From NCBI GenBank assembly GCA_002269645.1, contig NIVC01000001.1, forward strand, positions 1,364,001 through 1,428,000: a stretch of DNA of 64,000 nucleotides, written 5' to 3'. Origin of the DNA: Macrostomum lignano. Taxonomy: Eukaryota. The first letter of the stretch is position 1. The number at the start of each line of letters is the position of its first letter. Positions 12,219 through 41,968 of this stretch are shown here, one piece after another. Below the pieces are notes generated by a model that was given only the letters and a program-made list of their open reading frames with translations, did no database searches and had not been told where the DNA came from. The translations under genes and the position numbers were made by a program.

Positions 12219-15200
12219 ATGTTTCTCTTCATCCGCGACAACCATTGCCGTTTCGACGAGTTCAACTTGACTCGCCTGCTGCACGACGATGACTACCAGG
12301 ACCTGGAGCGGCGGATGCTGGCCTGCATCTGCCCCATTAGCTTGCTGGCTCTGTGCGCCAACGCTCTGAGCCTCTTTGTGTTCCTGCGGCAGCGCTGGGA
12401 CAACCGGGCCATCCGCCTCGTGCTGGTCAGCGTCTCCGTCTGGGAGGTGTTGCTCCAGTCTGCCATCCTGCTAGAGGCTGTGCTGGTGTTCAGCGGAGTC
12501 AAGCACAGCCACAGTCCAGCCAGTTATGCGATCACCTCGCTGCTGCAGGTGCGTCTTGAGCACTGTGTACTCTAACTAACTAATCATTAGCTGGGAGTGA
12601 GTTTGTGCACTACTTGAGTTCATGATTGAGTTCAGAGTGAGTTCATGAGTGAGTTCATGAGTGAGTTCATGAGTGAGTTCATGAGTGAGTTCATGAGTGA
12701 GTTCATGAGTGAGTTCATGAGTGAGTTCAAGAGTGAGTTCATGAGTGAGTTCATGAGTGAGTTCAAGAGTGAGTTCATGAGTGAGTTCATGAGTGAGTTC
12801 ATGAGTGAGTTCATGAGTGAGTTCATGAGTGAGTTCATGAGTGAGTTCATGAGTGAGTTTATGACTGAGCTCATAGCTGAGTACATCAGCTCGCTTTCAT
12901 CGCCGCTGCCCCGCCCGCAGGTGTGCATCAACGCAGCCACGGCGGTCCGAAACTGGAACATGGTGGTGCTGAGCCTGTCCCGCTGCGAGCTGGTCTGGTA
13001 CCCGATCCCGTCCCGCGGCCAGCAGCTCATCTTCACCATGCGCCGGCTCAAGCTGCTGCTTGGCCTCATCGTGGCAGCCGGCCTCGTCCTCGGCTGCCTT
13101 GCCCGCCTCGAATACATCGGCGTGGTCTGCGAGAACATCAGCGACCCAGAGATGGGCTCCGTGGTGATGCGCCCTCTGCTCAGCGGAGTTCAGCTGCACC
13201 AGCCGCCGCCTCCGTCGCCGTCCGCGCCGCCCGCGGTCCTGAGCGGCGATTCCAACCTGTCTGGCGGCAATTTCAGCCAGCAGTCTCTGCTGCTAGAAGC
13301 GGCAACAGCTGAGCCGATCGGCGCCCCCGGCCTGCCGTCCATCGCCTTTTACACCTTCCAGTCGCTGCTGCCGCCGCTAATCATCCCCTTCCCCACCGTG
13401 CTGATGCTGCTGAAGCTTCGGCGAGCCCGGCAGGTGACCAGAATCCTGCAACTGTCGAGGAGCTCCAATTTCCAACTGCCCGGCTCGAGGGCCGACCTGC
13501 GGCTGCTGATGCGGAGAGGGACTTCCGAGCAGCAGCCCCAGCAGCCAGCCAGGTAAGAGATTGCCCTGCTGACTTTCACGGTTTCTGAGTTACCGCAGAC
13601 TCAAATCCCAGTAGACTCAAATCCCAGTAGACTCAAATCCCATGCAGTAGACTCAAATCCCATGCAGTAGACTCAAATCCCATGCAGTAGACTCAAATCC
13701 CATGCAGTAGACTCAAATCCCATGCAGTAGACTCAAATCCCATGCAGTAGACTCAAATCCCATGCAGTAGACTCAAATCCCATGCAGTAGACTCAAATCC
13801 CATGCAGTAGACTCAAATCCCATGCAGTAGACTCAAATCCCATGCAGTAGACTCAAATCCCATGCAGTAGACTCAAATCCCATGCAGTAGACTCAAATCC
13901 CATGCAGTAGACTCAAATCCCATGCAGTAGACTCAAATCCCATGCAGTAGACTCAAATCCCATGCAGTAGACTCAAATCCCAGTGGACTCAAATCCCATG
14001 CAGTAGACTCAAATCCCAGTGGACTCAAATCCCATGCAGTAGACTCAAATCCCAGTGGACTCAAATCCCATGCAGTAGACTCAAATCCCAGTGGACTAAA
14101 ATCCCATGCAGTAGACTCAAATCCCAGTGGACTCAAATCCCATGAAGTAGACTCAAATCCCAGTAGACTCGAATCCCAGTAGACTCGATTCCCGGTAGAC
14201 TCGAATCCCAGTAGACTCTATTCCCAGAAGACTTAATTCCCAGTAGACTCGATTCCCAGTAGACTCAAATCCCAGTAGACTCGAACCCCAGTAGACTCAA
14301 TTCTCAGTAGACTCAATTCCCAGTAGACTCAAATCCCAGTAGACTCGAATCCCAGTAGACTCGATTCCCGGTAGACTCGAATCCCAGTAGACTCGAATCC
14401 CAGTAGACTCAAATCCCAGTAGACTCAAATCCCAGTAGACTCAAATCCCTTAGATCCCGACTCAAAAAGGATTCGATTCCATGAAACATCTCATGAGCTC
14501 GCATCCTCAACTGGCAGATCTCACTCACTGCGCAGTCAGCAGCAGCAGCCCACCGAGAGGCTCTCGTCGTCGCAGTCGAGCTCGTACGCGGCGCAGCAAT
14601 ATCGAACCTCCGTGTTGGTGCTGGCCCTGGTGTTAATCTTCTGCCTGCTCGAGTCGCCAACCTTTCTGAGCACGCTGTCTCACTACCTGCTGCCCAAGCT
14701 TGACCTGCTGGGCCACAATACCATCTTCATTGTCAACATCCTGACCGTGATGGACTCGCTGCTCAACTTCTTTGTTTACGCCGCCGCGAGCTCAACATTC
14801 CGTCAGGTTTGTTAGCTGCCGACGTTCCAGATCCCAAATTCCCAAATCCGAAAATCCCATATCCCAAAATCGCAAATCCCGAATCCCAAAATCCCAAATC
14901 CCAAAGTCCCAATTCCCAAAGTCCCAATTCCCAAAGTCCCAATTCCCAAAGTCCCAATTCCCAAAGTCCCAATTCCCAAAGTCCCAATTCCCAAAGTCCC
15001 AATTCCCAAAGTCCCAATTCCCAAAGTCCCAATTCCCAAAGTCCCAATTCCCAAAGTCCCAATTCCCAAAGTCCCAATTCCCAAAGTCCCAATTCCCAAA
15101 GTCCCAATTCCCAAAGTCCCAATTCCCAAAGTCCCAATTCCCAAAGTCCCAATTCCCAAAGTCCCGAATCCCAAAATCCCAAATCCCAAATCCCAAAGTC

Positions 15201-17874: not shown

Positions 17875-20800
17875 ATGCTGGGCCAGCAGCGCAGGCAGCA
17901 GCGGTCGGGAGCGATCTCGCTGCCCGCCGCCAGTTCGCAGACTCGATTTCAACGCTTCATCCGGCGATTCTACGCCGCTCCGGGCAGCTTAATTGGGCAG
18001 GTGCGACGCAAATCCATGGCGGTGCTCAGCCCGCAAACTGCCGCGGCTGCAGCGGCTGCCGCCGCTGCTACAACAACTTCGGCCATATCGCCGAATTCAA
18101 CAACGGGTGGAGCTGGTGACACCTGCGGCAGCCAGGCGGATCTGGCCAGCATGATGCTGATGAAGCGGCCGCAGCCGGCCAGCCTGCAGTCGCTGCTGAG
18201 GAAAACTCGATTTACCAGCATCGAGCTCAAAGCCATTTATCGACGCTTCAAGACAGAGTGTCCCTACGGTAGGGCTGGGGCGGAGCTTTTACCTGGATCT
18301 GCTCTATTTTGTTTTGCTTGAGCAATTTTACCCCATAAAGATTGACGTGGCGGCTTATCAAAGAGATTGGGGAGGCGGCTTATCAAAGAGATTGGGGAGG
18401 CGGCTTATCAAAGAGATTGGGGAGGCGGCTTATCAAAGAGATTGGGGAGGCGGCTTATCAAAGAGATTGGGGTGTCGGTTTATCAAAGAGTAGGTTGGCT
18501 GTGTTGTGACAGTGCAACGAGATTTAGTTTACATGATGACTCATTGAATAGTTTGCTCTGATATCTATTGATAAGTGATTGCACAATCAGTGTTTAGTTT
18601 AACGTGCAAATGTTAGCTAACGATTGAGTAATTTACGTCGTGCATGCTTTGACTATAAATATATTGACCGAGACAGAAGTGTCTCCACTGTCTGACTAGA
18701 CTGAATTGAATTCATCAATTGACTACAAACACAAAAAATGGCGACGAGCGGACTCCCGTACCCAGCGGAGTTTCAACCAGTACCAGGCGAACCTCCTGTG
18801 ACATGGGCAAGGTGGATCAAGTCATTTGAGAACTTCCTGGTAGCTGGAGCTCTCGAAGAGGCATCAGAGAGTCGGAAAAAGGCGATCCTCCTGCATCTGC
18901 TCGGTGAGGAAGGACGCCGCCGAGCTGCAAACGTCGATGCAAGCAAGTCGCTTCAGGAGACCAAAAAGGCACTGAAGGCGATTTTCAGCTCGTCGAGAAG
19001 CGTCATAGCAGAGCGCTTCGCCTTTCGGCAGCGAGCCCAGCACGACGGCGAGAGCATCGGAGACTACGCGATGGCCTTGAGAGAGCTGGCAACAAACTGC
19101 AACTTTGGAACTTTCCACGACGAGATGATTCGAGACCAGCTCGTGGAGAAAACCTGCGTACCTCGCATCAGGGAAAGACTCCTGATGGAGGAGGACGATC
19201 TGACGCTAGATGACGCCATCAAGAAGGCAGAGCGAATCGAAGCAGCCATCAGAGATGCCAAGCAGGTCAGCGGCCCAGAGCTCCACGTGAAGGCGCTGAG
19301 CAAGAAGCCGAAGCCAGCTGCTCGCCATGAGAAGACTGCAGCACCATGTTCAAAGTGCACTCGATGCGGAGGCAACCACGGGCACAAGGGCGAATGCAAG
19401 GCGATGGGCCAGAAATGCAGACGATGCGGCAAGACGAACCATTTCGCGAAAATGTGCCGCATGAAAGCGGTCTCTGCGATCGACACCCAAGAGCCTGCAG
19501 AGTCCAGCCTGACGGTCCTGGCCGTGAACAACAAGAGCACAGACAGCTTATTCTGCGAATGCCGTCTGGACGGACAGCTGATTCGACTGCAAATCGACTG
19601 CGGTGCTGCCGTTTCGTTGCTCAACACGGAGACGTTCAAGAAGTCCTTCGCCAGGCACCCGCTGCTTCCGACGGGCACAAAACTGGAGGCATACGGCGGA
19701 TCTGCGATCAAGACCATCGGCAAGGTCGAGCTTCCTGTGACGTTCAACGGCATCAGGACAGAAGCCACATTCTACGTCGCCGACAAAGGAGCGAACATCC
19801 TGGGCCGCGACCTGTTTCAGGCCCTCGGATTCAAAATCTTCCAAGGTGACAGCAGAGTGATGAGCATCAGCGAGACTACGATCGAGCGCGACTTCCCCGG
19901 AATCTTCGACGGTCTGGGCCGGTCCAAGAGCTTCATTCACCGGACAAAGATCGACGCCTCGGTCAAGCCTGTGTCTCAGCCAATGCGGAAGCTGTCGATC
20001 GGCCTGAAGGACGAAGTGACGTCAGAGATCAGCCGGATGGAGCAACAGGGCATCATTGAGAAGGTCGACGCGTCCGAGTGGGTTAGCAACGTTGTCGTGA
20101 CGCGCAAGAAGGAGTCCAACAAGGTTCGCCTCTGCGTGGATCTGCGGCAGGTCAACAAGGCGGTGATCGCGAACCGCTATCCGGTACAGTCAATCGAGGA
20201 CCTATCGGCCAGCATCAACGGCTCGAAGTGCTTCAGCAAGCTGGACCTGCGTCAAGGCTACCAGCAGATTCCGCTGCATCCAGACTCTCGAGGACTGACG
20301 TGCTTCATCACCGATGACGGCCTGTACCAGTTCACCGTGGTTCACCGTGGTGCCATTAGGGCTATCCAGCTCCGGAGCTGCCTTCCAGCGAGCCCTGCAG
20401 ACGGTGCTTCGAGGAGCTCCTGGCGCCATCAACATTGTGGACGACATCCTGGTGCACGGCAAGGACGAGACTGAGCACGACAAGAACCTCCGAGAAGTCC
20501 TAGGGCGGATTCATCGCGAAGGCTTCACACTCAATCGAGAGAAGTGCAAATTCCGGCAGGCGAGCGTGGATTTCTTCGGATTGGTCATCTCTGCAGACGG
20601 CATCAAACCGACCAAATCCAACGTCGACGCAATTCTAAGAATTCCTGAGCCATCAACGGTCGCGCAAATTCAATCGTTTCTTGGCGCAGTGAACTTTTTG
20701 CACAAGTTCATACCGCATTACTCAGCAATTGCCGAGCATCTGAGACAACTGCTTAAAAAAGACGGCGACTGGCACTGGGGTGAGCGAGAACGTACAGCCT

Positions 20801-23800
20801 TCCGTACACTGAGTCAGCCGTAACCAGCAGCCCAGTGTTAGCTCATTTTGACTGCTAAGATGAGACGTACGTCACCTGCGATGCAAGTCTAGACGGACTG
20901 GGGGCGGTGCTCAGCCAAGTACAAAATGGAAAAGAGGTGCCAATCGCGTTCGCATCGAGAGCACTCAGCCCAGCGGAAAAGCGATACTCAGCCGGAGAGC
21001 GAGAAGCCCTGGCCTGTGTATGGAGCATCGAACGCTGGCACTACTATCTATACGGCAGACGAGTAACGCTGCGCACCGACCACAAGGCCCTGACAACTTG
21101 CTCGACTCGAAAGGCATGGGGCACAGGCCTCTGCGCATTCATCGATGGGTCGAGAGACTTCGCGGCTACGACGTCCGGTTTGAGCACATCCCTGGCGCTG
21201 ACAACAAGTGCGCGGACATGCTGTCCAGATGGGCCACGACGGAGCGCGTTCCAGCCGAGGAGACCGACGAGGAGGGCTACGTCTACGCAGTCGTTGACTC
21301 GAAGACAACGCTGACGGCAGACGCACTGGCAACGGCGACCAAGGAGGACGAAGTGCTGCAGGCGGTTTTGCGGTACATCTCGGGCGGCTGGCCAACGAAG
21401 GTGAACAGCTCTCTGAAGCCGTACTTCAACGTCCGGGACGAGCTGTTCTGCTGGAACAATGGTCAGTGCCTCGGCCGAGGTGAACGCGCGATCATCCCGA
21501 CGAGCCTGTGACTTCAAGTCATCGAGGAGGCCCACGAAGGGCATCCGGGCGTTGTTCGGTCAAAGCAGCGGTGCCGCGACACGGTCTGGTTTCCTGGAAT
21601 TGACCGGCAGGTGGAGGACCACGTCAAGAACTGCACGGCCTGCACTCTGGCGGAGAAGTCCGGCAAGCCTCAACAGACGATCGTGACACCAATCGAGTGG
21701 CCAGATGGACCGTGGGACAAGGTCGAGATCGACATCTTCGGCGAGGTCGCCGCGGCTCCTCGACACCAGCGGTTCCTACTGGTGATCCACGACCTGTACA
21801 GCAAGTGGCCGGAGATTGCAGCCATGGAAACCGTCACCTCTGCTAACATTATCAAGACGCTTCGGAAGCTATTCGGCCGGTGGGGAGTCCCAAAGATGCT
21901 GATCAGCGACAACGGACCCCAGTTCGTCAGCGACGAGTTCAAAGAGTTCCTGCAAGCCGAGGGCATCCAGCACAGCCGAGTGAGCCGGTACTACCCGCAA
22001 GGCAACGGCGGAGTCGAGCGATTCAACAGGAGTCTGAAGGAGGGCCTGGCAGCGAACCTGAGGGCGGGAGCGAAGTTCGAGGACGCCATCGACCTGGTGC
22101 TCAAGACCTACAGGACCAGCCAGCACGCTCTCACCGGGCCGACTCCAGCCGAGCTGATGATCGGGTGCAAGCTGCGGTCCGGACTGCAGCTGCTCAGGCC
22201 AACTCCAGTGCAACAGCGGGACGACAGCGATCTGCGCGACGCTATCACTGAGAGGCAAGCCAAGAACGCCGACTACACCAACAAGCGAAGGCGGGCTCGT
22301 GACTCTACGCTCCAGGCCGGAGACTGGGTCTGGCGACAGACGCCGCACCGAGCGCACAAGCTGGCGACCTTCGTGCTGTCCGACGGTACAAAGTGGCAAG
22401 CGAGTCGGCTGGTTAAGTGCAACAGCCCACCGGCTGACAACGGCGCGGCCGACCAAGAGGACGACTTGTTCGATCTGCCGCTGCCGCCAGCTCCGCACCC
22501 ACTGACGGGCAAGCCGCCACCTCCACCTGAACTTCGAAGGTCGACTCGAGCTCGACGACCACCGGCGCGCTTCCCTCTCCCGGAAGGGGGGGAGAATGTT
22601 GTGACAGTGCAACGAAATTTAGTTTGCATGACGACTCATAGAATAGTTTGCTCTGATATCTATTGATAAGTGATTGCACAATCAGTGTTTAGTTTAACGT
22701 GCAAATGTTAGCTAACGATTGAGTAATGTACGTCGTGCATGCTTTGACTGTAAATATATTGACCGAGACAGAAGTGTCTCCACTGTCTGACTAGACTGAA
22801 TTGAATTCATCAATTAACTACAAACACAACAGGCGGATCATCAAAGAAATTGGGGTGGCGGCGGCTCATCAGAGAGATGGGGCGTCGGCTCATAAAAGGC
22901 CCTGTGCAATAATGGCAGCTAATGAGGAAATCAGTATTGAAATTTTTTGGCAATAAAGTCAAGGCCTTGTAGTTGATGGCAATTGGCAAGCTATAAGTAG
23001 TTAATCAAGCAAAAAAGGCTTTGAATTGAAGATCTATTATCGGCTCATTTTGTCATAAAAGGTGGCATAAATTGCAGCGCAAAGAGAGAGCACTAAATCA
23101 GCGAATATCGCAGGAGAATCTGAGTTTAATATTAATAGTGCAAATCGTCAGTATAATAAAGCTGGCAGTAAAAGCTGCCTGTTTTAGGCCATCAAAGTCT
23201 GCTGGCTTTTGGCTATGAATTATGCATGTATTGCCGCATTTTTATGCCTTTTGAAAAGTGGCATAGAATGTGCATAGAATGGCCCTTGCCAGGGAGCTAG
23301 TGAAAATCTCCAATGCCATGCACCAGGAGACTCACAAAGCATTGAGCTGATCAAGAGAATGAAACAGATAATGGAAAATAAAAATTGGTAATGAATGCGT
23401 TAGAATTAACTTGCATGGTGAGCTTTTTGGCGCAGAAGTCTTCCTACCTCAGGCCTGCACTGCAGCAGCACTCTATTGACATTCTTGCATTATTGAAGGC
23501 AGTCATTCTCTCCCCTAACCAGTGTTCCACTCTGGCTAACCATGTATAGTTGCTCCACACCAGTAGCGCAACCAGAAATGTTTTTAGGGGGGGGGGGAGG
23601 CGGATTCTGGAGAGTAAAGACCCAAGGGGGCGGATTCTGGAGGGTAAAGACCCAAGGGGGCGGATTCTGGAGAGTAAAAAGACCAAAAGGGGCGGATTCT
23701 GATTTTTTTAGGTCTCCGCCTTTGGGGGGAGCCAGCGCTCCACACCCCTTGCTTTTTCTTGCTTTAAACTGGATGTACATTTACTGCACGCCAATCAAGT

Positions 23801-26139
23801 TCCTCTCTCTCTCCAACTTCTCTTGCTCTCTCCACTGGATGTACATTTACTGCACGCCAATCAAAGTTCCTCTGTCTCTCTCTCCACTGGATGTACATTT
23901 ACTGCACGCCAATCAAATTTCCCCCCTCTCTCCCCACTGGATGTACATTTACTGCATGTCAATAAAATTTCCCCCGTTTCTCTCTCCACTGGATGTACAT
24001 TTACTGCACGCCAATCAAATTTCCCCCGTCTCTCTCTCCACTGGATGTACATTTACTGCACGCCAATCAAGTCCCCCCCTCTCTCTCCACTGAATGTACA
24101 TTTACTGCACGCCAATCAAGTTCCCCTCTCTCTCTCCACTGAATGTACATTTACTGCACGCCAATCAAGTTCCCCTCTCTCTCTCCACTGAATGTACATT
24201 TACTGCACGCCAATCAAGTTCCCCTCTCTCTCTCCACTGGATGTACATTTACTGCAGCACGCCAAACAAGTACCTCGCTCTCCCCACTGCATACCTGCAT
24301 ACCCTTCCTCATGCCTAATGAATCAAAACTTACGACATGCCGCTTTGCTTCCTTATCGATTCAAGTTCTCGAAATTTTCCCTTCACGAGTGCACTGAAGT
24401 AGCTGCTTAGTCTATAGCCCAATTAAGCCAAATCAATCTTCTGAAGTATTATCAATGCTATTGACGCAAAAAGTCCTTGCATAGTTGACGAGATTTTCTT
24501 AAGAAAACTGCAGCTCTCTCAGCATTAGCAGCACTCAGACAATCGATGACGCTGAGAAGCTATTTTAGCTACTGCTGTCAGGATCTCTACAACATAGGAT
24601 AGGAGAAAGCCGTCAATCGATTGAGGGTCTCACATCGAGCAGAATTGCTCAAGAGTCCAGTCTACGTATCGATGAATGGTTGCTGGATTGGCAAAATGGG
24701 CCCAGCAACTCACGAAAACCCAGCTTTTAAACCTGCTGCTTGCTGCTCCGCAGAAATAAGCACTATTCCTTAGTCGTCTTAAGTCTTTCTTGACTATCAA
24801 CGCAGTCAGAGCTCTGCGAAAGCGAAAGCGCCCTCTCTGCCCTCCGGCTCAACGAAAAAGAGGAGAGTTGCCATCGCCCCAGCCCACTTGTTCAGGGGCT
24901 TTTCTCTCAATTAACATTCCCAGGGCACTTCATTGCCTGCTGAGACCTTCAGAACTGCGCTTCCGGGATTCCTAGGCCAGGCGTGGTGTAGCGCCTGACC
25001 CAGCTGGGCCGCTTCTGTATTATTCATGTCCTGGGCTTAGGGATCTGAGGCCCCCTCAACTATTGTACCGAATTGCTATCTCGGTGGCTTGCCCAGCTGG
25101 AGTGATACCTGCCGGTGCTTTTGGCTCATTAACTTCAATAGAATGCTGACATTGGGGAGCATTGGGCAGTGAAGCAGTACAAGCTACCATTCCGCAAATC
25201 CACTGGCTTTGCAGTAACCTGCAGCGTTTTGTACTTTAATAATGAGCGAAATGCATGGAATGCTTCAGCCTTAAACATGGAACTCTTCTTGTCTGTTCTG
25301 ATCTGCTCTGCTTCTGCTTCTGTTTCTGCTTCTGTTTCTGTTTCTGCTTCTGCTTCTGTTTCTGTTTCTGCTTCTGTTTCTGTTTCTGCTTCTGCTTCTG
25401 TTTCTGCTTCTGCTTCTGTTTCTGTTTCTGTTTCTGTTTCTGTTTCTGCTTCTGCTTCTGTTTCTGCTTCTGCTTCTGTTTCTGTTTCTGTTTCTGTTTC
25501 TGCTTCTGTTTCTGTTTCTGCTTCTGCTTCTGTTTCTGCTTCTGCTTCTGCTTCTGCTTCTGCTTCTGCTTCTGTTTCTGTTTCTGTTTCTGTTTCTGCT
25601 TCTGTTTCTGTTTCTGTTTCGGCTTCTGCTTCTGTTTCTGCGTTCACCCGAGTGCCCACCTGAACCCCGGACGGCATCCCGCAGGCGTCATGCACGAGGA
25701 GATCCTGGAGCACATCCTGGCGCAGATCTTCCCACTGGGCAACGCGCACCTGTTCTCGCATTTCGTCTTCTGCTGCTTCGACGTCAACCGAACCGGCTCG
25801 GTGAACTTTGAGCAGTTCGTGCTCTGCCTGAACATCCTGCTGAAGGGCAGCCGGGAGGAGCGGCTGCGCTGGATCTTCAACATGTACGACATCAACAGGG
25901 ACGGCGAAATCAACCGGCGCGAGCTGCAGGAGCTTGTCGGCGCCGTTTTCGAATTGCTCGGCGCCCGAGTGCGACCGGCTGTGTCCCCCGGCGACATCGA
26001 ACGTCACACTGGCGAAGTTTTCTGTCGACTGGACACCGACGGCGACGGAGTGATCAGCTGGGAGGACTTCCGGGCTCACTTCCGCCGGAATCCGCAGCTG
26101 GCAGCCGGAATGGACGCCCTGCTCACCCCTATTGCTTGA
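17875..26139 (+). CDS. KChIP/calsenilin-like neuronal calcium sensor, ~282 aa; exons 17875-18268 and 25685-26139
   Basis: Exon 1 ends [19 protein letters not shown](G), matching the NCS-family CPxG disabled EF1. The phase-1 GT-AG intron joins to GVMHEE... with EF loops [24 protein letters not shown] and [12 protein letters not shown]. An N-terminal extension without a myristoyl Gly is KChIP-like. Confidence 0.88.
18345..18490. repeat. 25-bp minisatellite GGGGAGGCGGCTTATCAAAGAGATT (insertion target of the Gypsy element)
   Basis: Direct inspection. Degenerate units resume at 22832. Confidence 0.85.
18502..18736 (+). repeat. 5' LTR of Gypsy-1
   Basis: TGTTGTGACAG...CACAAAA, direct repeat of 22597-22831. 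Confidence 0.92.
18739..18748 (+). promoter_or_regulatory. Primer-binding site TGGCGACGAG (tRNA-Ser-like), overlapping the gag ATG
   Basis: Lies 2 nt after the LTR and is complementary to a tRNA 3' end CUCGUCGCCA (tRNA-Ser GCU, from memory). Confidence 0.7.
22582..22596 (+). promoter_or_regulatory. Polypurine tract of Gypsy-1
   Basis: Purine-only run ending GGGGAGAA immediately before the 3' LTR. Confidence 0.85.
22597..22831 (+). repeat. 3' LTR of Gypsy-1
   Basis: TGTTG...CAACA. Confidence 0.92.
23770..24260. repeat. ~50-bp minisatellite (CTCTCCACTGGATGTACATTTACTGCACGCCAATCAAG...)
   Basis: Direct inspection. Confidence 0.88.
25308..25640. repeat. Hexamer microsatellite (TTCTGC/TTCTGT)n upstream of the KChIP exon 2 acceptor
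   Basis: Direct inspection. Confidence 0.92.
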
Positions 26140-26419: not shown

Positions 26420-26810
26420 CGCTTCTCTCCGTTTCTCCCTCTCCGTATCCCCCTCTCTGTATCTCCCTCTCTGTATCTCCCACTCTATATCTCCCTCTCT
26501 GTATCTCCCTCTCTGTATCTCCCTCTCTGTATCTCCCTCTCTGTATCTCCCTCTCTGTATCTCCCTCTCTGTATCTCCCACTCTCCGTATCTCCCTCTCC
26601 GCATCTCCCTCTCCGTATCTCCCTCTCTGTATCTCCCTCTCCGTATCTCCCTCTCTGTATCTCCCTCTCCGTATCTCCCTCTCTGTATCTCCCTCTCCGT
26701 ATCTCCCTCTCCGTATCTCCCTCTATGTATCTCCCTTTCTGTATCTCCCTCTCTGTATCTCCCTCTCCGTATCTCCCTCTCTGTATCTCCCTCTATGTAT
26801 CTCCCTTTCA
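26420..26810. repeat. 14-bp minisatellite GTATCTCCCTCTCT
   Basis: Direct inspection. A second array of the same family lies at 27850-28288. Confidence 0.9.
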
Positions 26811-27849
26811 TTCTCCTCAAACAAAGTCGCAACAAGTGACTTTTACGAACTTCTGAATTAAAATGAAAGCAAGTCGGAACGGGGATTTGCCATTGACAAG
26901 TTCCGTCGAGAAAAATCCCATTTACGAGTAAATGCTCATCAAAGTCAATCCCCAGATAATGGGCTGACAATCCTTCTCTCAGGACAGCTGCAATTTGATT
27001 GGCTGATTCCTACCCCCAGAGTCCCCTTATCGCCCTCGCCTATTTCAGATGAAATGTACAATTTTACAATTCACTTTGTGTTACTAAAAATAGCTCCCTC
27101 TCCCAGAACTGCAATATGATTGGCTGATGCACATCGTTAAGCCAAAATAACTTCGACCTCCTCTGCCCTCAAACTTTAATGGGAAATTCATATCATACAT
27201 GTATATCACTTAAATTTATTAATTATTATTTTATTATTAACTTCTACTAAGCGTCTCTAATATTTGCTCTGATAGTGATATTACCGTCTATTCATTTCTC
27301 TCCTTTGTTACAATATATTTTTTTAGAAAATTTCAATACTATATTATAAAAATAAATGTATAAATCATTCAAGAATGTAAAATCCAACAAATCTACGAGA
27401 TTTTTGTAATTTGTGAGCAACACTCCATTCACCGCGATGTGGGTACACTCAATACCACTCCCCCATTTTTAATCATCCCTCAGACTTTTCCGTGTAATCA
27501 ATTATAAAACTGAAAATATTCTGCCTACACTACTGCATCTACTGAAATAAGTAGCGCTTTAGATTTATGATTTTTGAAAAAATCTCTTTGAAAAAAAAAG
27601 TTATGGTAACTTCGGATTTCAAATCAAGCCGTTCATGACGCCAAAGTTGAATTCGCAGCGAGAAAAATTTTATTTAATAATTAATTCGTGCTCCTTCAAA
27701 GTAGGCAGATGTTGCAGAACAGGCTGCCATTGTTAACAATTGCTGACATCCTTTTCAGTTGCTGTCGGTAATCGAATTCCAGCTCTGCGGATGGCGCTCT
27801 GAAGTGCAGTTTGGAGCGGAGCATCAAGTTCCCTTGCGAGTGTTCCTTT

Positions 27850-28288
27850 CCATATCTCCCTCTCTGTATCTCCCTCTCAGTATCTCCTTCTCCGTATCTC
27901 CCACTCTGTATCTCCCTCTCTATATCTCCCTCTCAGTATCTCCCTCTCAGTATCTCCCTCTCAGTATCTCCCTCTCCGTATCTCCCTCTCAGTATCTCCC
28001 TCTCAGTATCTCCCTCTCCGTATCTCCCTCTCAGTATCTCCCTCTCCGTATATCCCTCTCCGTATCTCCCTCTCCGTATCTCCCTCTCCGTATCTCCCTC
28101 TCAGTATCTCCCTCTCAGTATATCCCTCTCCGTATCTCCCTCTCCGTATATCCCTCTCCGTATCTCCCTCTCAGTATCTCCCTCTCAGTATATCCCTCTC
28201 CGTATCTCCCTCTCCGTATATCCCTCTCCGTATCTCCCTCTCCGTATCTCCCTCTCCGTATCTCCCTCTCAGTATCTCCCTCTCTCCG
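27850..28288. repeat. 14-bp minisatellite GTATCTCCCTCTC(A/C)
   Basis: Direct inspection. Confidence 0.9.
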
Positions 28289-28695
28289 TAGATTTCTTCG
28301 GCTGCTATTGGCAATAGTTTTCTTAATCAGCAAACTTGAAGGCTCCTATTCTGCTGTCCAAGCCTGAAGCCCAGTTCAATTCATTGGTTGATGACTCAAC
28401 CCCCCCCCCCCCTATTGAGCGTTTCTGTCTAAAAAGTTGCCTTTTAGCTTTTCTAATAACTGAAGTCGGACCAGACGTGAATACTGGGATTGGGATAATT
28501 TCCCGAAACGAAAAACTCCACGTTGCTACATATGGATGATGTTGAGCAATATGGGAGCTCACTGCAATTTCTCAGTTTTGGTGGTGGCTAATTAGTATTA
28601 ATTCCTCCAATTATACAAGTAACCTAATCTGCAGGTGCTAGATTAGCAATCCATTCTGAGTTCAACTGAATCGCCGAATTGAAACACGGACTTAC

Positions 28696-29098
28696 CCTCG
28701 GCTATCTCAATCAGCTTCATTTCTAATAGATGTTCAGCGACATTGCCGAATCGAGCCTCGGACCTCTTCCTGCCCGGGTGCCACGAGTTGTGAAAGTGGA
28801 CACTGCGGAAGTAGGCGGGCCGGTCTTCGGAGGAGCCGCCGCCCCCGCCGCCGCCGCCCCCGCTGCTGCCACCCCCGCCGCCAGCCGGAGTCATCGACTG
28901 CTGCGGCTGCTGACTGCGACAGGCCGGTCCCCAGCTTCTGCACGGCATCAGGTTGAAGAAGCGTCGAGCTCTCGACAAAGTTGGCGAAGCCGAAGATGGC
29001 GGAGCAGCTAGACAGAGGCCTGTCAGCAGCAGCAGCAGCAGCAGCAAGTGCAGCGGCGGCTGTCGTTGGTACAGCACGCCATCGGCTGGCGAAGGCAT
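28696..29098 (-). CDS. Neuropeptide precursor, first coding exon (Cys-loop peptide plus GnRH/corazonin-like amidated peptide)
   Basis: ATG at 29098; signal peptide [16 protein letters not shown]; RR-FFNLMPCRSWGPAC-R; Gly/Ser spacer; R-SVHFHNSWHP-G-RKR. GTAAGT donor after 28696; the downstream exon is not securely located. Confidence 0.78.
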
Positions 29099-29404: not shown

Positions 29405-29705
29405 TGTTTCTCCGCCATTCACTTTGTCACTTTTTATCTTGTCACTTTCCACCTTGTCAGGTTCCACCTTGTCAGGTTCCACCTTGTTAGGTTCCGTCTT
29501 GTCACTCTCTACCTTGCCAGGTTCCGTCTTGTCACTCTCTACCTTGCCAGGTTCCGTCTTGTCAGGTTCCACCTTGTCAGGTTCCACCTTGTCAGGTTCC
29601 GTCTTGTCACTCTCCACCTTGTCAGGTTCCGTCTTGTCACTCTCCACCTTGTCAGGTTCCGTCTTGTCACTCTCCACCTTGTCAGGTTCCGTCTTGTCAC
29701 TCCCT
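29405..29705. repeat. Minisatellite of CCTTGTCAGGTTCC / GTCTTGTCACTCTCCA units
   Basis: Direct inspection. Confidence 0.85.
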
Positions 29706-30499: not shown

Positions 30500-32400
30500 A
30501 AGAGAGAGGAGATGGCGAAAGGAGATGGGGATGGAGGCGGAGGGAGGTGGAGAGGGAGGCGGAGGGAGGGAGATGGAGAGGGAGGCGGAGGGAGGTGGAG
30601 AGGGAGGCGGAGGGAGGTGGAGAGGGAGGCGGAGGGAGGGAGATGGAGAGGGAGGCGGAGGGAGGGAGATGGAGAGGGAGGCGGAGGGAGGTGGAGAGGG
30701 AGGCGGAGGGAGGTGGAGAGGGAGGCGGAGGGAGGGAGATGGAGAGGGAGGCGGAGGGAGGGAGATGGAGAGGGAGGCGGAGGGAGGTGGAGAGGGAGGC
30801 GGAGGGAGGTGGAGAGGGAGGCGGAGGGAGGGAGATGGAGAGGGAGGCGGAGGGAGGTGGAGAGGGAGGCGGAGGGAGGGAGATGGAGAGGGAGGCGGAG
30901 GGAGGTGGAGAGGGAGGCGGAGGGAGGTGGAGAGGGAGGCGGAGGGAGGGAGATGGAGAGGGAGGCGGAGGGAGGTGGAGAGGGAGGCGGAGGGAGGTGG
31001 AGAGGGAGGCGGAGGGAGGGAGATGGAGAGGGAGGCGGAGGGAGGGAGATGGAGAGGGAGGCGGAGGGAGGTGGAGAGGGAGGCGGAGGGAGGTGGAGAG
31101 GGAGGCGGAGGGAGGGAGATGGAGAGGGAGGCGGAGGGAGGGAGATGGAGAGGGAGGCGGAGGGAGGTGGAGAGGGAGGCGGAGGGAGGTGGAGAGGGAG
31201 GCGGAGGGAGGGAGATGGAGAGGGAGGCGGAGGGAGGTGGAGAGGGAGGCGGAGGGAGGTGGAGAGGGAGGCGGAGGGAGGGAGATGGAGAGGGAGGCGG
31301 AGGGAGGTGGAGAGGGAGGCGGAGGGAGGGAGATGGAGAGGGAGGCGGAGGGAGGTGGAGAGGGAGGCGGAGGGAGGTGGAGAGGGAGGCGGAGGGAGGG
31401 AGATGGAGAGGGAGGCGGAGGGAGGTGGAGAGGGAGGCGGAGGGAGGTGGAGAGGGAGGCGGAGGGAGGGAGATGGAGAGGGAGGCGGAGGGAGGTGGAG
31501 AGGGAGGCAGTGGGAGGGAGATGGAGAGGGAGGCGGAGGGAGATGGAGAGGGAGGCGGAGGGAGATGGAGAGGGAGGCGGAGGGAGATGGAGAGGGAGGC
31601 GGAGGGAGATGGAGAGGGAGGCAGAGAGACTGAGGGGGAGACGGAGATGGAGAGGGAGGCAGAGAGACTGAGGGGGAGACGGAGATGGAGAGGGAGGCAG
31701 AGAGACTGAGGGGGAGACGGAGATGGAGAGGGAGGCGGAGGGAGATGGAGAGGGAGGCGGAGGGAGATGGAGAGGGAGGCGGAGGGAGATGGAGAGGGAG
31801 GCAGAGAGACTGAGGGGGAGACGGAGATGGGAGGGAGGCAGAGAGACTGAGGGGGAGACGGAGATGGAGAGGGAGGCGGAGGGAGATGGAGAGGGAGGCG
31901 GAGGGAGATGGAGAGGGAGGCGGAGGGAGATGGAGAGGGAGGCAGAGAGACTGAGGGGGAGACGGAGATAGAGAGGGAGGCAGAGAGACTGAGGGGGAGA
32001 CGGAGATGGAGAGGGAGGCAGAGAGACTGAGGGGGAGACGGAGATGGAGAGGGAGGCAGAGAGACTGAGGGGGAGACGGAGATGGAGAGGGAGGCAGAGA
32101 GACTGAGGGGGAGACGGAGATGGAGAGGGAGGCAGAGAGACTGAGGGGGAGACGGAGATGGAGAGGGAGGCAGAGAGACTGAGGGGGAGACGGAGATGGA
32201 GAGGGAGGCAGAGAGACTGAGGGGGAGACGGAGATGGAGAGGGAGGCAGAGAGACTGAGGGGGAGACGGAGATGGAGAGGGAGGCAGAGAGACTGAGGGG
32301 GAGACGGAGATGGAGAGGGAGGCAGAGAGACTGAGGGGGAGACGGAGATGGAGAGGGAGGCAGAGAGACTGAGGGGGAGACGGAGATGGAGAGGGATAGG
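30500..32400. repeat. 1.9-kb G/A-rich composite minisatellite (GGAGAGGGAGGCGGAGGGAG...)
   Basis: Direct inspection. The long ORFs here are repeat artefacts. Confidence 0.93.

Positions 32401-34369: not shown

Positions 34370-41968
<7,599 letters not shown>

Follow-up and report, generated by a model that had tools for sequence, protein, structure and literature searches.

Gonadotropin-releasing hormone (GnRH)/corazonin (CRZ) signalling is among the oldest hormone systems of bilaterians, and its precursors are unusually uniform, consisting of a signal peptide, a peptide that starts with pyroglutamate (pGlu), an amidation site and a Cys-bounded associated peptide. The family is classed among the "N-terminal peptides" (PMC8557429). 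Here we compare the described members with a gene of the flatworm Macrostomum lignano that lies on the minus strand of a 64,000-nucleotide stretch of contig NIVC01000001.1 (assembly GCA_002269645.1, positions 1,364,001 to 1,428,000), hereafter called the window. Its predicted product looks like a secreted prohormone with an amidated peptide, SVHFHNSWHP, that resembles those of the GnRH/corazonin superfamily. On balance, this is probably the gene, or one of the genes, by which the spiralian GnRH/corazonin-type family that includes planarian grh-1 is represented in Macrostomum, divergent and with a rearranged precursor.

Closest described precursors

Sakai et al. 2017 (PMC5592718) list protostome GnRH/CRZ peptides, including the leech peptide pQSIHFSRSWQPa, in their Table 1, and spiralian examples are known from Crassostrea (QNYHFSNGWQPGKR...), Octopus (oct-GnRH) and Helobdella (pQSIHFSRSWQPa) (PMC5592718, PMC8557429). 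The precursors of molluscs, annelids, nemerteans, phoronids and brachiopods have in common with that of Macrostomum the hormone pattern H-F-x-N/x-[GS]-W-x-P, the Gly donor, a di- or tribasic site, a helix motif, K-[IL]-I-E...E-R (putative in Macrostomum), about 16 residues past the cleavage site and one intron within that helix; Lottia and Capitella even have the same G-RKR-S. They differ in the Gln-peptide that stands right after the signal peptide, in the Cys-bounded helix and in the phase-0 intron after K-I-I-E, each of which is absent from the Macrostomum gene. The family as a whole tolerates the loss of Gln, and a copy may also stand internally, flanked by basic sites; examples are the xenacoelomorph peptides and the Nemertoderma precursor with its two ligands (PMC6188537), ArCRZ of starfish, HNTFTMGGQNRWKAG-NH2 (PMC4923880), Capitella AKH/GnRH, and ascidian multi-copy GnRH (PMC5592718). 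A missing pGlu has precedents in the xenacoelomorph peptides (PMC6188537) and in ArCRZ (PMC4923880); in the AKH precursor of Capitella, the second copy, AFSFSLPGRWGAQ, likewise lacks it. In these precedents a family peptide nevertheless follows the signal peptide, whereas nothing recognisable stands there in Macrostomum.

In flatworms, the system is represented by planarian grh-1 and, more recently, by polyclads, and a 2026 review calls it lost from planarians and parasites (PMC13551398). The planarian gene was named "gonadotropin releasing hormone like-1" by Collins et al. 2010, who reported its expression in restricted cells of the central nervous system (PMC2953531). Smed-grh-1 (UniRef E3T7U7; sequence in PMC8557429 supplement 26) has 97 residues, arranged as a signal peptide, QSYHFSNDWLPGKR, YHTGHQMFRLKK, GFHYFRLKK and a Cys-bounded tail. 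Like the Macrostomum product, it is a small flatworm precursor that carries more than the hormone, and its pQSYHFSNDWLP-NH2 is identical at 6/10 positions, with the same Pro-amide end. The two differ in that Smed-grh-1 places its hormone first, with Gln, has the linear extra peptides YHTGHQMFRL and GFHYFRL downstream and keeps Cys...Cys in the tail, whereas the Macrostomum precursor has an internal hormone without Gln, a candidate extra peptide upstream with two Cys, and a tail without Cys. Since Smed-grh-1 has already been described, a flatworm GnRH-like precursor with several peptides is not new; the refuting condition named in the original prediction, a two-peptide layout already described for such precursors, therefore applies in part, the layout of Smed-grh-1 being a different one. 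As a side observation, the 2026 review says that freshwater planarians lost GnRH/corazonin-type peptides (PMC13551398), and Smed-grh-1 (PMC2953531) scores 22-29 bits on the spiralian profile hidden Markov model (HMM) used here.

Among polyclads, GnRH/corazonin precursors were reported in the larval atlas of Prostheceraeus crozieri (PMC10396302), and two GnRH/CRZ peptides with four receptors in Stylochoplana/Notoplana (PMC13551398); Macrostomorpha are absent from both accounts. These reports place GnRH/CRZ signalling in free-living marine flatworms, whose habitat is also that of M. lignano. Our literature search found no description of a GnRH/CRZ-type gene in Macrostomum.

A GnRH/corazonin-like decapeptide

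Family profile HMMs were built from 17 full-length spiralian corazonin-type ("invGnRH") precursors, with no flatworm sequence included (PMC8557429 supplement 26). These models scored the Macrostomum product at 17.2-19.7 bits (E ~1e-7 with Z=1, for a single target sequence); the aligned stretches are nyhFSnGWkpG-Krs in the profile and SVHFHNSWHPGrKRS in the product. All 5,000 composition-matched shuffles stayed below the score of the product (best shuffle, 8.2 bits), and the product ranked first among the 721 stop-to-stop open reading frames (ORFs) of the window, 9 to 12 bits above the second. The decapeptide is identical in register at 6/10 positions to the peptides of Smed-grh-1, leech (Hr-GnRH) and octopus (oct-GnRH) and shares their Pro-amide end, so the likeness to octopus put forward in the original prediction is borne out, although the planarian and leech peptides are the closer comparators. 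Conserved are the H, F, W, Pro-amide, Gly and basic-site positions of the family peptide; Gln1 and Ser6 differ, the latter being replaced by His. The precursor is small (148 aa, against ~80-170 in the family) and begins with a predicted signal peptide, the peptide core corresponds to x-x-H-[FY]-S-x-[GSD]-W-x-x of the family profile, and a C-terminal Gly amidation donor is followed by a tribasic site (WHP-G-RKR-S).

The genome of M. lignano measures about 764 Mb, and the strict motif HF..[GS]W.PG[KR][KR] is expected by chance 1.8e-5 times per window, or about 0.2 times in the six frames of a genome of that size. Because about one chance match with this HMM score is to be expected in the six-frame ORFs of such a genome, the peptide match taken alone is not proof. 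Chance becomes very unlikely once this match is taken together with a start codon and signal peptide within one ORF, flanking basic sites, good signals for splicing and polyadenylation, and a gene model obtained independently.

Gene structure and coding potential

The ORF opens with an ATG at 29098-29096 and runs to 28696, where it is closed by a consensus donor, GAGG|gtaagt (28696/28695). Exon 1 reads as a 31-residue signal peptide followed by APPSSASPTLSRARR, FFNLMPCRSWGPAC, R, SQQPQQSMTPAGGGGGSSGGGGGGGGGSSEDRPAYF, R, SVHFHNSWHP, G, RKR and SEARFGNVAEHLLEMKLIEIAE. The signal peptide, basic sites, coordinates of both peptides, Gly spacer and SVHFHNSWHP-G-RKR given in the original prediction are exact on the minus strand, and the last exon that it had supposed was located at 27798-27755, together with an acceptor, TGA and poly(A) signals. 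The acceptor (...cacttcag|AG, 27799/27798) is followed by 14 more codons, ERHPQSWNSITDSN, and by a TGA that ends at 27755, which yields a predicted product of 148 aa from two coding exons. All features are compiled in Table 1.

Table 1. Coordinates of the prohormone gene, its predicted product and the mobile element in the window
Feature	Position	Strand	Remarks
Coding exon 1	28696..29098	-	ATG to splice donor; 134 codons + first base of codon 135
Signal peptide, residues 1-31	29006..29098	-	predicted cleavage A31|A32; C-L-A|A at -3/-1, read from sequence
RARR, furin/prohormone-convertase-type site (R-x-R-R)	28961..28972	-	from sequence; putative cleavage
FFNLMPCRSWGPAC, putative Cys-x6-Cys peptide	28919..28960	-	from sequence
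Single R after FFNLMPCRSWGPAC	28916..28918	-	from sequence
Spacer SQQPQQSMTPA-G5-SS-G9-SS-EDRPAYF	28808..28915	-	(GGC)n-type low complexity; predicted disordered
R98, putative monobasic cleavage site, Arg at P6	28805..28807	-	from sequence; putative cleavage
SVHFHNSWHP, GnRH/corazonin-like decapeptide	28775..28804	-	family HMM, shuffles, hhalign
G-RKR: amidation donor Gly (28774-28772) and tribasic site (28771-28763)	28763..28774	-	from sequence
Associated peptide, exon-1 part SEARFGNVAEHLLEMKLIEIAE	28697..28762	-	predicted helix with K-L-I-E-I-A-E-E-R
Intron	27799..28695	-	897 nt, phase 1, gtaagt...cacttcag; 14-bp satellite array inside at 27845-28284
Coding exon 2	27755..27798	-	44 nt; (E)RHPQSWNSITDSN + TGA
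Poly(A) signals, overlapping ATTAAA/AATAAA	27669..27678	-	~80 nt past stop codon
rve integrase, Maverick/Polinton-like element	48797-49594		
Protein-primed family-B DNA polymerase with Endonuclease_7-like stretch	51581-54308		
A32-type packaging ATPase	56543-57304	-	
Double-jelly-roll capsid-like protein	59128-60411		

The two-exon structure is supported by a UniRef entry of M. lignano, A0A1I8GWJ3 (P0001 in our searches), with 82 residues, which is 99% identical to the product over 68 residues (Q67 to E134), has the same splice junction, AE|ER, as the one located here, and ends in ERHPQSWNWITDSN. Because the tail of this entry is encoded at 27798-27755 behind an acceptor in the right phase, two coding exons and an 897-nt intron can be assigned. 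The entry represents a second genomic copy: both copies are intact over the 82 residues, with only 2 substitutions, and the Gly run of the spacer is identical in the two. No genomic locus is on record for A0A1I8GWJ3, and within the window exon 1 has no second copy, its only matches there being of the (GGC)n and (CTG)n kind. The entry begins at Q67, downstream of the Cys-loop segment, and has no N-terminus.

A codon-usage table was built from the Pfam-supported host exons of the window. Across the whole of exon 1, usage amounts to +0.148 bits per codon in frame, versus -0.474 and -0.245 in the other frames, and it supports the frame in the signal peptide, the spacer and the peptide/tail segments; over residues 33-72, which include the Cys loop, it is indecisive (0.001 in frame versus 0.23 in another frame). 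The structure was predicted with AlphaFold from the single sequence, with low confidence, and speaks weakly for disorder: most of the model is disordered (mean pLDDT 55.7), which is what a prohormone should show, and its only confident segment is the signal-peptide helix (block pLDDT 72-86).

These data bear on the possibility that the locus is non-functional, either a duplicate in decay, in a genome that is rich in repeats and recently polyploid, or a chance ORF and motif that were annotated automatically. The locus does lie between satellite arrays, with a GC-rich (GGC)n tract that leaves frames open and with further ORFs overlapping exon 1. In addition, the codon usage of residues 33-72 is indecisive, and by chance alone a genome would contain the strict motif about 0.2 times and a match with this HMM score about once. 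Against this stand the coincidence of start and signal peptide, two-sided basic sites, amidation Gly, phase-compatible splice sites, stop and poly(A) signals, the intactness of two genomic copies and the codon usage of the remaining segments, and we consider a non-functional locus quite improbable.

The public label of A0A1I8GWJ3, "Spondin domain-containing protein", would imply that the product is the N-terminal stretch of an extracellular matrix protein with a spondin domain. The database label, which is attached to the 82-residue fragment only, is the one point in favour of this reading. No Pfam domain was detected at E up to 10, including Spondin_N, a beta-sandwich of ~190 residues; in the PDB, the full product matches artificial Gly-Ser linkers, and no match at E up to 10 is left when its non-repetitive half is searched. 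Moreover, the product stops at 148 residues with a poly(A) signal, the model is disordered, and minus-strand translations downstream to 19 kb, inspected by eye, contain only repeats and transposon remnants. The spondin reading therefore appears most implausible, and we treat the label as an annotation artefact of untraced origin.

Associated peptide and intron position

All 17 reference precursors have a helix of the K-I-I-E-D-E-V-x-R type after the cleavage site, enclosed by two Cys that lie 24-27 residues apart. The corresponding K-L-I-E-I-A-E-E-R of Macrostomum starts 16 residues past RKR, while the oyster motif starts 17 residues past KR. An hhalign comparison aligned 38 columns, from the peptide through the helix, at 94.7% probability and E 5.8e-8, and MAFFT placed MKLIEIAEER under the helix motif IKIIEDEVER, with the motif Arg invariant in all 14 sequences. 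A helix-only HMM gave the Macrostomum tail 1.2 bits (p = 0.057), and with the peptide fixed and the tail shuffled, 30/800 shuffles reached the real hhalign score (p ~0.04).

To place the intron, we used database ORFs that had been called on genomic DNA and read into the family intron, and three loci were then checked on the DNA. A phase-0 intron follows the K-I-I-E column directly in the oyster (...ATA GAG|gtaaat), another bivalve (...ATA GAG|gtgagt) and Capitella (...ATC AAC|gtaggt), and the same column is implied by read-through ORFs from one annelid and one nemertean. We found no statement in the papers of a phase-0 intron after the K-I-I-[EQN] column in spiralian corazonin-type genes. The Macrostomum intron (AAG CTG ATT GAG ATA GCC GAG G|gtaagt) interrupts the same helix 10 nt further 3', in phase 1. 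Its position in the same helix hints at common descent, though it is no strict match.

The alternative on which this evidence bears most is that of a real, lineage-specific prohormone whose ...SWHP-amide is convergent, or has diverged too far to signal through GnRH/CRZ-type receptors. In favour of it are the missing hallmarks of the family (no pGlu, no N-terminal position, no Cys pair, another intron phase) and a similarity concentrated in ~11 residues with a marginal tail signal; in addition, Sakai et al. caution against being misled by partial consensus motifs within this superfamily (PMC5592718). However, all strongly conserved peptide positions except Gln1 and Ser6 match in the same register and length, tail and intron are collinear with the family, and another flatworm has a bona fide member. 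We thus regard convergence as rather unlikely.

Departures from the family layout

The original prediction had described the hormone as internal and without an N-terminal Gln, and the ORF confirms this; the norm of a signal peptide followed by a Gln-peptide holds in 17/17 references, in Smed-grh-1 and in every database match. Several observations weigh against membership in the family. Instead of following the signal peptide directly, the hormone lies 67 residues past the predicted cleavage, and it begins with Ser after Arg98 (CGC), with no N-terminal Gln. No Cys occurs after the hormone, whereas a Cys pair is present in 17/17 references, and the intron is in phase 1 and 10 nt away from the conserved phase-0 position. 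On the same models, Smed-grh-1 scores 22-29 bits versus 17-19 for the Macrostomum peptide, a score that by itself is expected about once per genome over all six-frame ORFs, and the tail similarity by itself is marginal (p 0.04-0.06). The uninterrupted ORF is the single element that ties the signal peptide to the hormone, since A0A1I8GWJ3 starts at Q67. Finally, a word-seeded search, a HMMER search of 1.84 billion representatives, a metagenome scan and two profile searches returned no orthologue from another species.

The only match in those searches was A0A1I8GWJ3, to which the profiles add canonical mollusc, annelid, nemertean and planarian precursors; further HMMER matches (P0002-P0005) are poly-Gly artefacts. 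Neither profile search recovered a canonical flatworm precursor beyond Smed-grh-1, a weak negative, as these searches are word-seeded and the peptide scores near the E-value ceiling. The strings SVHFHNSWHP and FFNLMPCRSWGPAC had no match in the literature.

The unusual layout could in principle be an artefact of the gene model, the hormone gene being real but having another 5' exon or an internal intron, with a Cys loop that is never translated. An acceptor-like CGCAG|T indeed precedes the peptide immediately, the Cys loop has the weakest coding signal, and A0A1I8GWJ3 lacks everything upstream of Q67. We therefore considered an internal intron that would restore a signal peptide|peptide junction. 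There are only three in-frame GT...AG pairs, with the weak donors GTCTAG, GTCGAG and GTGCAG, none of them canonical, and none gives a signal peptide|Gln junction or cleanly removes the whole spacer. No frame-compatible Gln precedes the peptide, and A0A1I8GWJ3 translates the Gly-rich spacer, so that at least this part lies between any signal peptide and the hormone. An artefact of this kind is accordingly very improbable, and a divergent family member with a rearranged precursor remains the reading that we favour.

The Cys-loop segment

According to the original prediction, the precursor joins the hormone to a second, disulfide-looped peptide, FFNLMPCRSWGPAC. The analysis gave no support for this composite: the Cys-x6-Cys segment is without relatives, codon usage does not favour its frame, and A0A1I8GWJ3 starts downstream of it. 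In particular, FFNLMPCRSWGPAC has no relative in the HMMER search of 1.84 billion representatives, Pfam, PDB or the literature, and it sits in the stretch of weakest coding signal, upstream of the start of A0A1I8GWJ3. As a decayed second copy of the hormone it scored -0.8 bits, and 2,145/10,000 shuffles scored as well (p = 0.21), which led us to reject that origin. Conceivably, the segment is cut out between RARR on its upstream side and a single Arg, with Arg at P8, on its downstream side, a deduction made purely from these residues.

Peptides of the allatostatin-C/somatostatin type have a C-x6-C ring with the loop C-[YA]-F-N-[PA]-[IV]-S-C at the C-terminal end of the precursor. With these, FFNLMPCRSWGPAC agrees in ring size alone; it is N-terminal, and its loop, RSWGPA, is unlike that consensus. 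Another comparison is offered by the flatworm FRL-peptide precursors Smed-spp-18/-19 and Sma/Sja-npp-28, of which GYHFFRL was confirmed by mass spectrometry (PMC2953531). In these precursors the peptide is internal, preceded by a short propeptide and a basic site, and RARR-FFNL is superficially like KR-GYHFFRL. They differ in having a Cys pair in the tail and KK after the peptide, whereas RARR-FFNL-MPC has no following basic pair. Kinship between RARR-FFNL and the YHFFRL peptides was rejected, as BLAST gave E about 0.3-4.1 in a five-sequence database, which is not significant, and the family HMMs give no link.

The reading of FFNLMPCRSWGPAC as a disulfide-loop peptide is thus unsupported, and the segment is referred to here as putative. 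We consider it unlikely that the Macrostomum precursor was rebuilt to the full extent, that is, with the hormone moved to an internal position, monobasic release, pGlu lost and a new bioactive, disulfide-bridged 14-mer, cyclo-FFNLMPCRSWGPAC, in the inserted N-terminal region.

Proposed processing

If the gene is transcribed, the signal peptide, whose hydrophobic core (residues 16-31) has a mean Kyte-Doolittle hydropathy of 2.61, would route the precursor to the secretory pathway. Monobasic cleavage sites have a further basic residue at P4, P6 or P8. Prohormone convertases could cleave after RARR46, R98 (monobasic, with Arg at P6) and RKR112, a carboxypeptidase would trim the basic residues, and peptidylglycine alpha-amidating monooxygenase would turn Gly109 into the amide. 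The predicted product is SVHFHNSWHP-NH2 (calculated [M+H]+ 1246.586), which may act on a rhodopsin-class G protein-coupled receptor (GPCR) of the GnRH/corazonin type. In the associated peptide, AlphaFold places a helix at residues 118-127. Compared with all other known precursors of the family, an insertion of 67 residues, in part a (GGC)n expansion, would have driven hormone and signal peptide apart, with loss of the pGlu start from the hormone and of the Cys pair from the associated peptide.

Genomic context

The window is animal DNA that contains a long terminal repeat (LTR) retrotransposon, a Maverick/Polinton-like element, cadherin/laminin-G/EGF exons, an EF-hand exon and many satellites; no tRNA or Rfam match was found in it. 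Satellite arrays bracket the prohormone gene at 26425-26806, 27845-28284, 29420-29701 and 30504-32396. One 14-bp satellite unit occurs both downstream of the gene and within its intron. On the upstream side, a 15/30-bp array is found ~320 nt from the ATG, and further upstream there is a purine-rich array of 1.9 kb with periods of 22, 48 and 96 bp, 66% GC and a GC skew of +0.71.

A type-III/DN-cadherin-like host gene lies upstream of the prohormone locus, at 34370-41965 (-). Its exons encode a large cadherin that combines EGF and laminin-G modules with a transmembrane segment and has the cytoplasmic tail of classical cadherins (CADH_Y-type_LIR, E 1e-15). The ORF at 25255-26139 (+) has a (TTCTGC)n-like "CFCFCF" first half and, in the second, two EF-hand pairs (E 1e-18) like those of neuronal calcium sensors/KChIP; a microsatellite in front of an exon is the probable reading. 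At 12219-13556 (+), two ORFs with hydrophobic stretches like GPCR transmembrane exons are split by an (SEFM)n microsatellite; they have no significant Pfam match, DUF6097 appearing below the cut-off only.

Among the mobile elements, the Maverick/Polinton-like element spans 48797-61293 and, at ~40% GC, is AT-richer than the rest of the window (its ORFs were scanned singly). An LTR-retrotransposon pol with RVT_1 and rve occupies 18738-22666 (+) as at least 4 overlapping ORFs, through frame changes, and a second integrase/RNase-H-like remnant is found at 42942-44299 (-).

Implications

This analysis corrects a misleading public annotation, that of A0A1I8GWJ3 as a spondin domain-containing protein. 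Were cyclo-FFNLMPCRSWGPAC secreted and bioactive, one gene would encode two unrelated hormones, in an order opposite to that of planarian grh-1. M. lignano is a model flatworm in which RNA interference and transgenesis are available. If the gene is expressed and processed as predicted, the GnRH/corazonin-type family would extend to this species, a member of the Macrostomorpha, an early branch of the flatworms, and the layout of the Macrostomum precursor would bear on how strictly receptor activation needs pGlu and the N-terminal position of the hormone.

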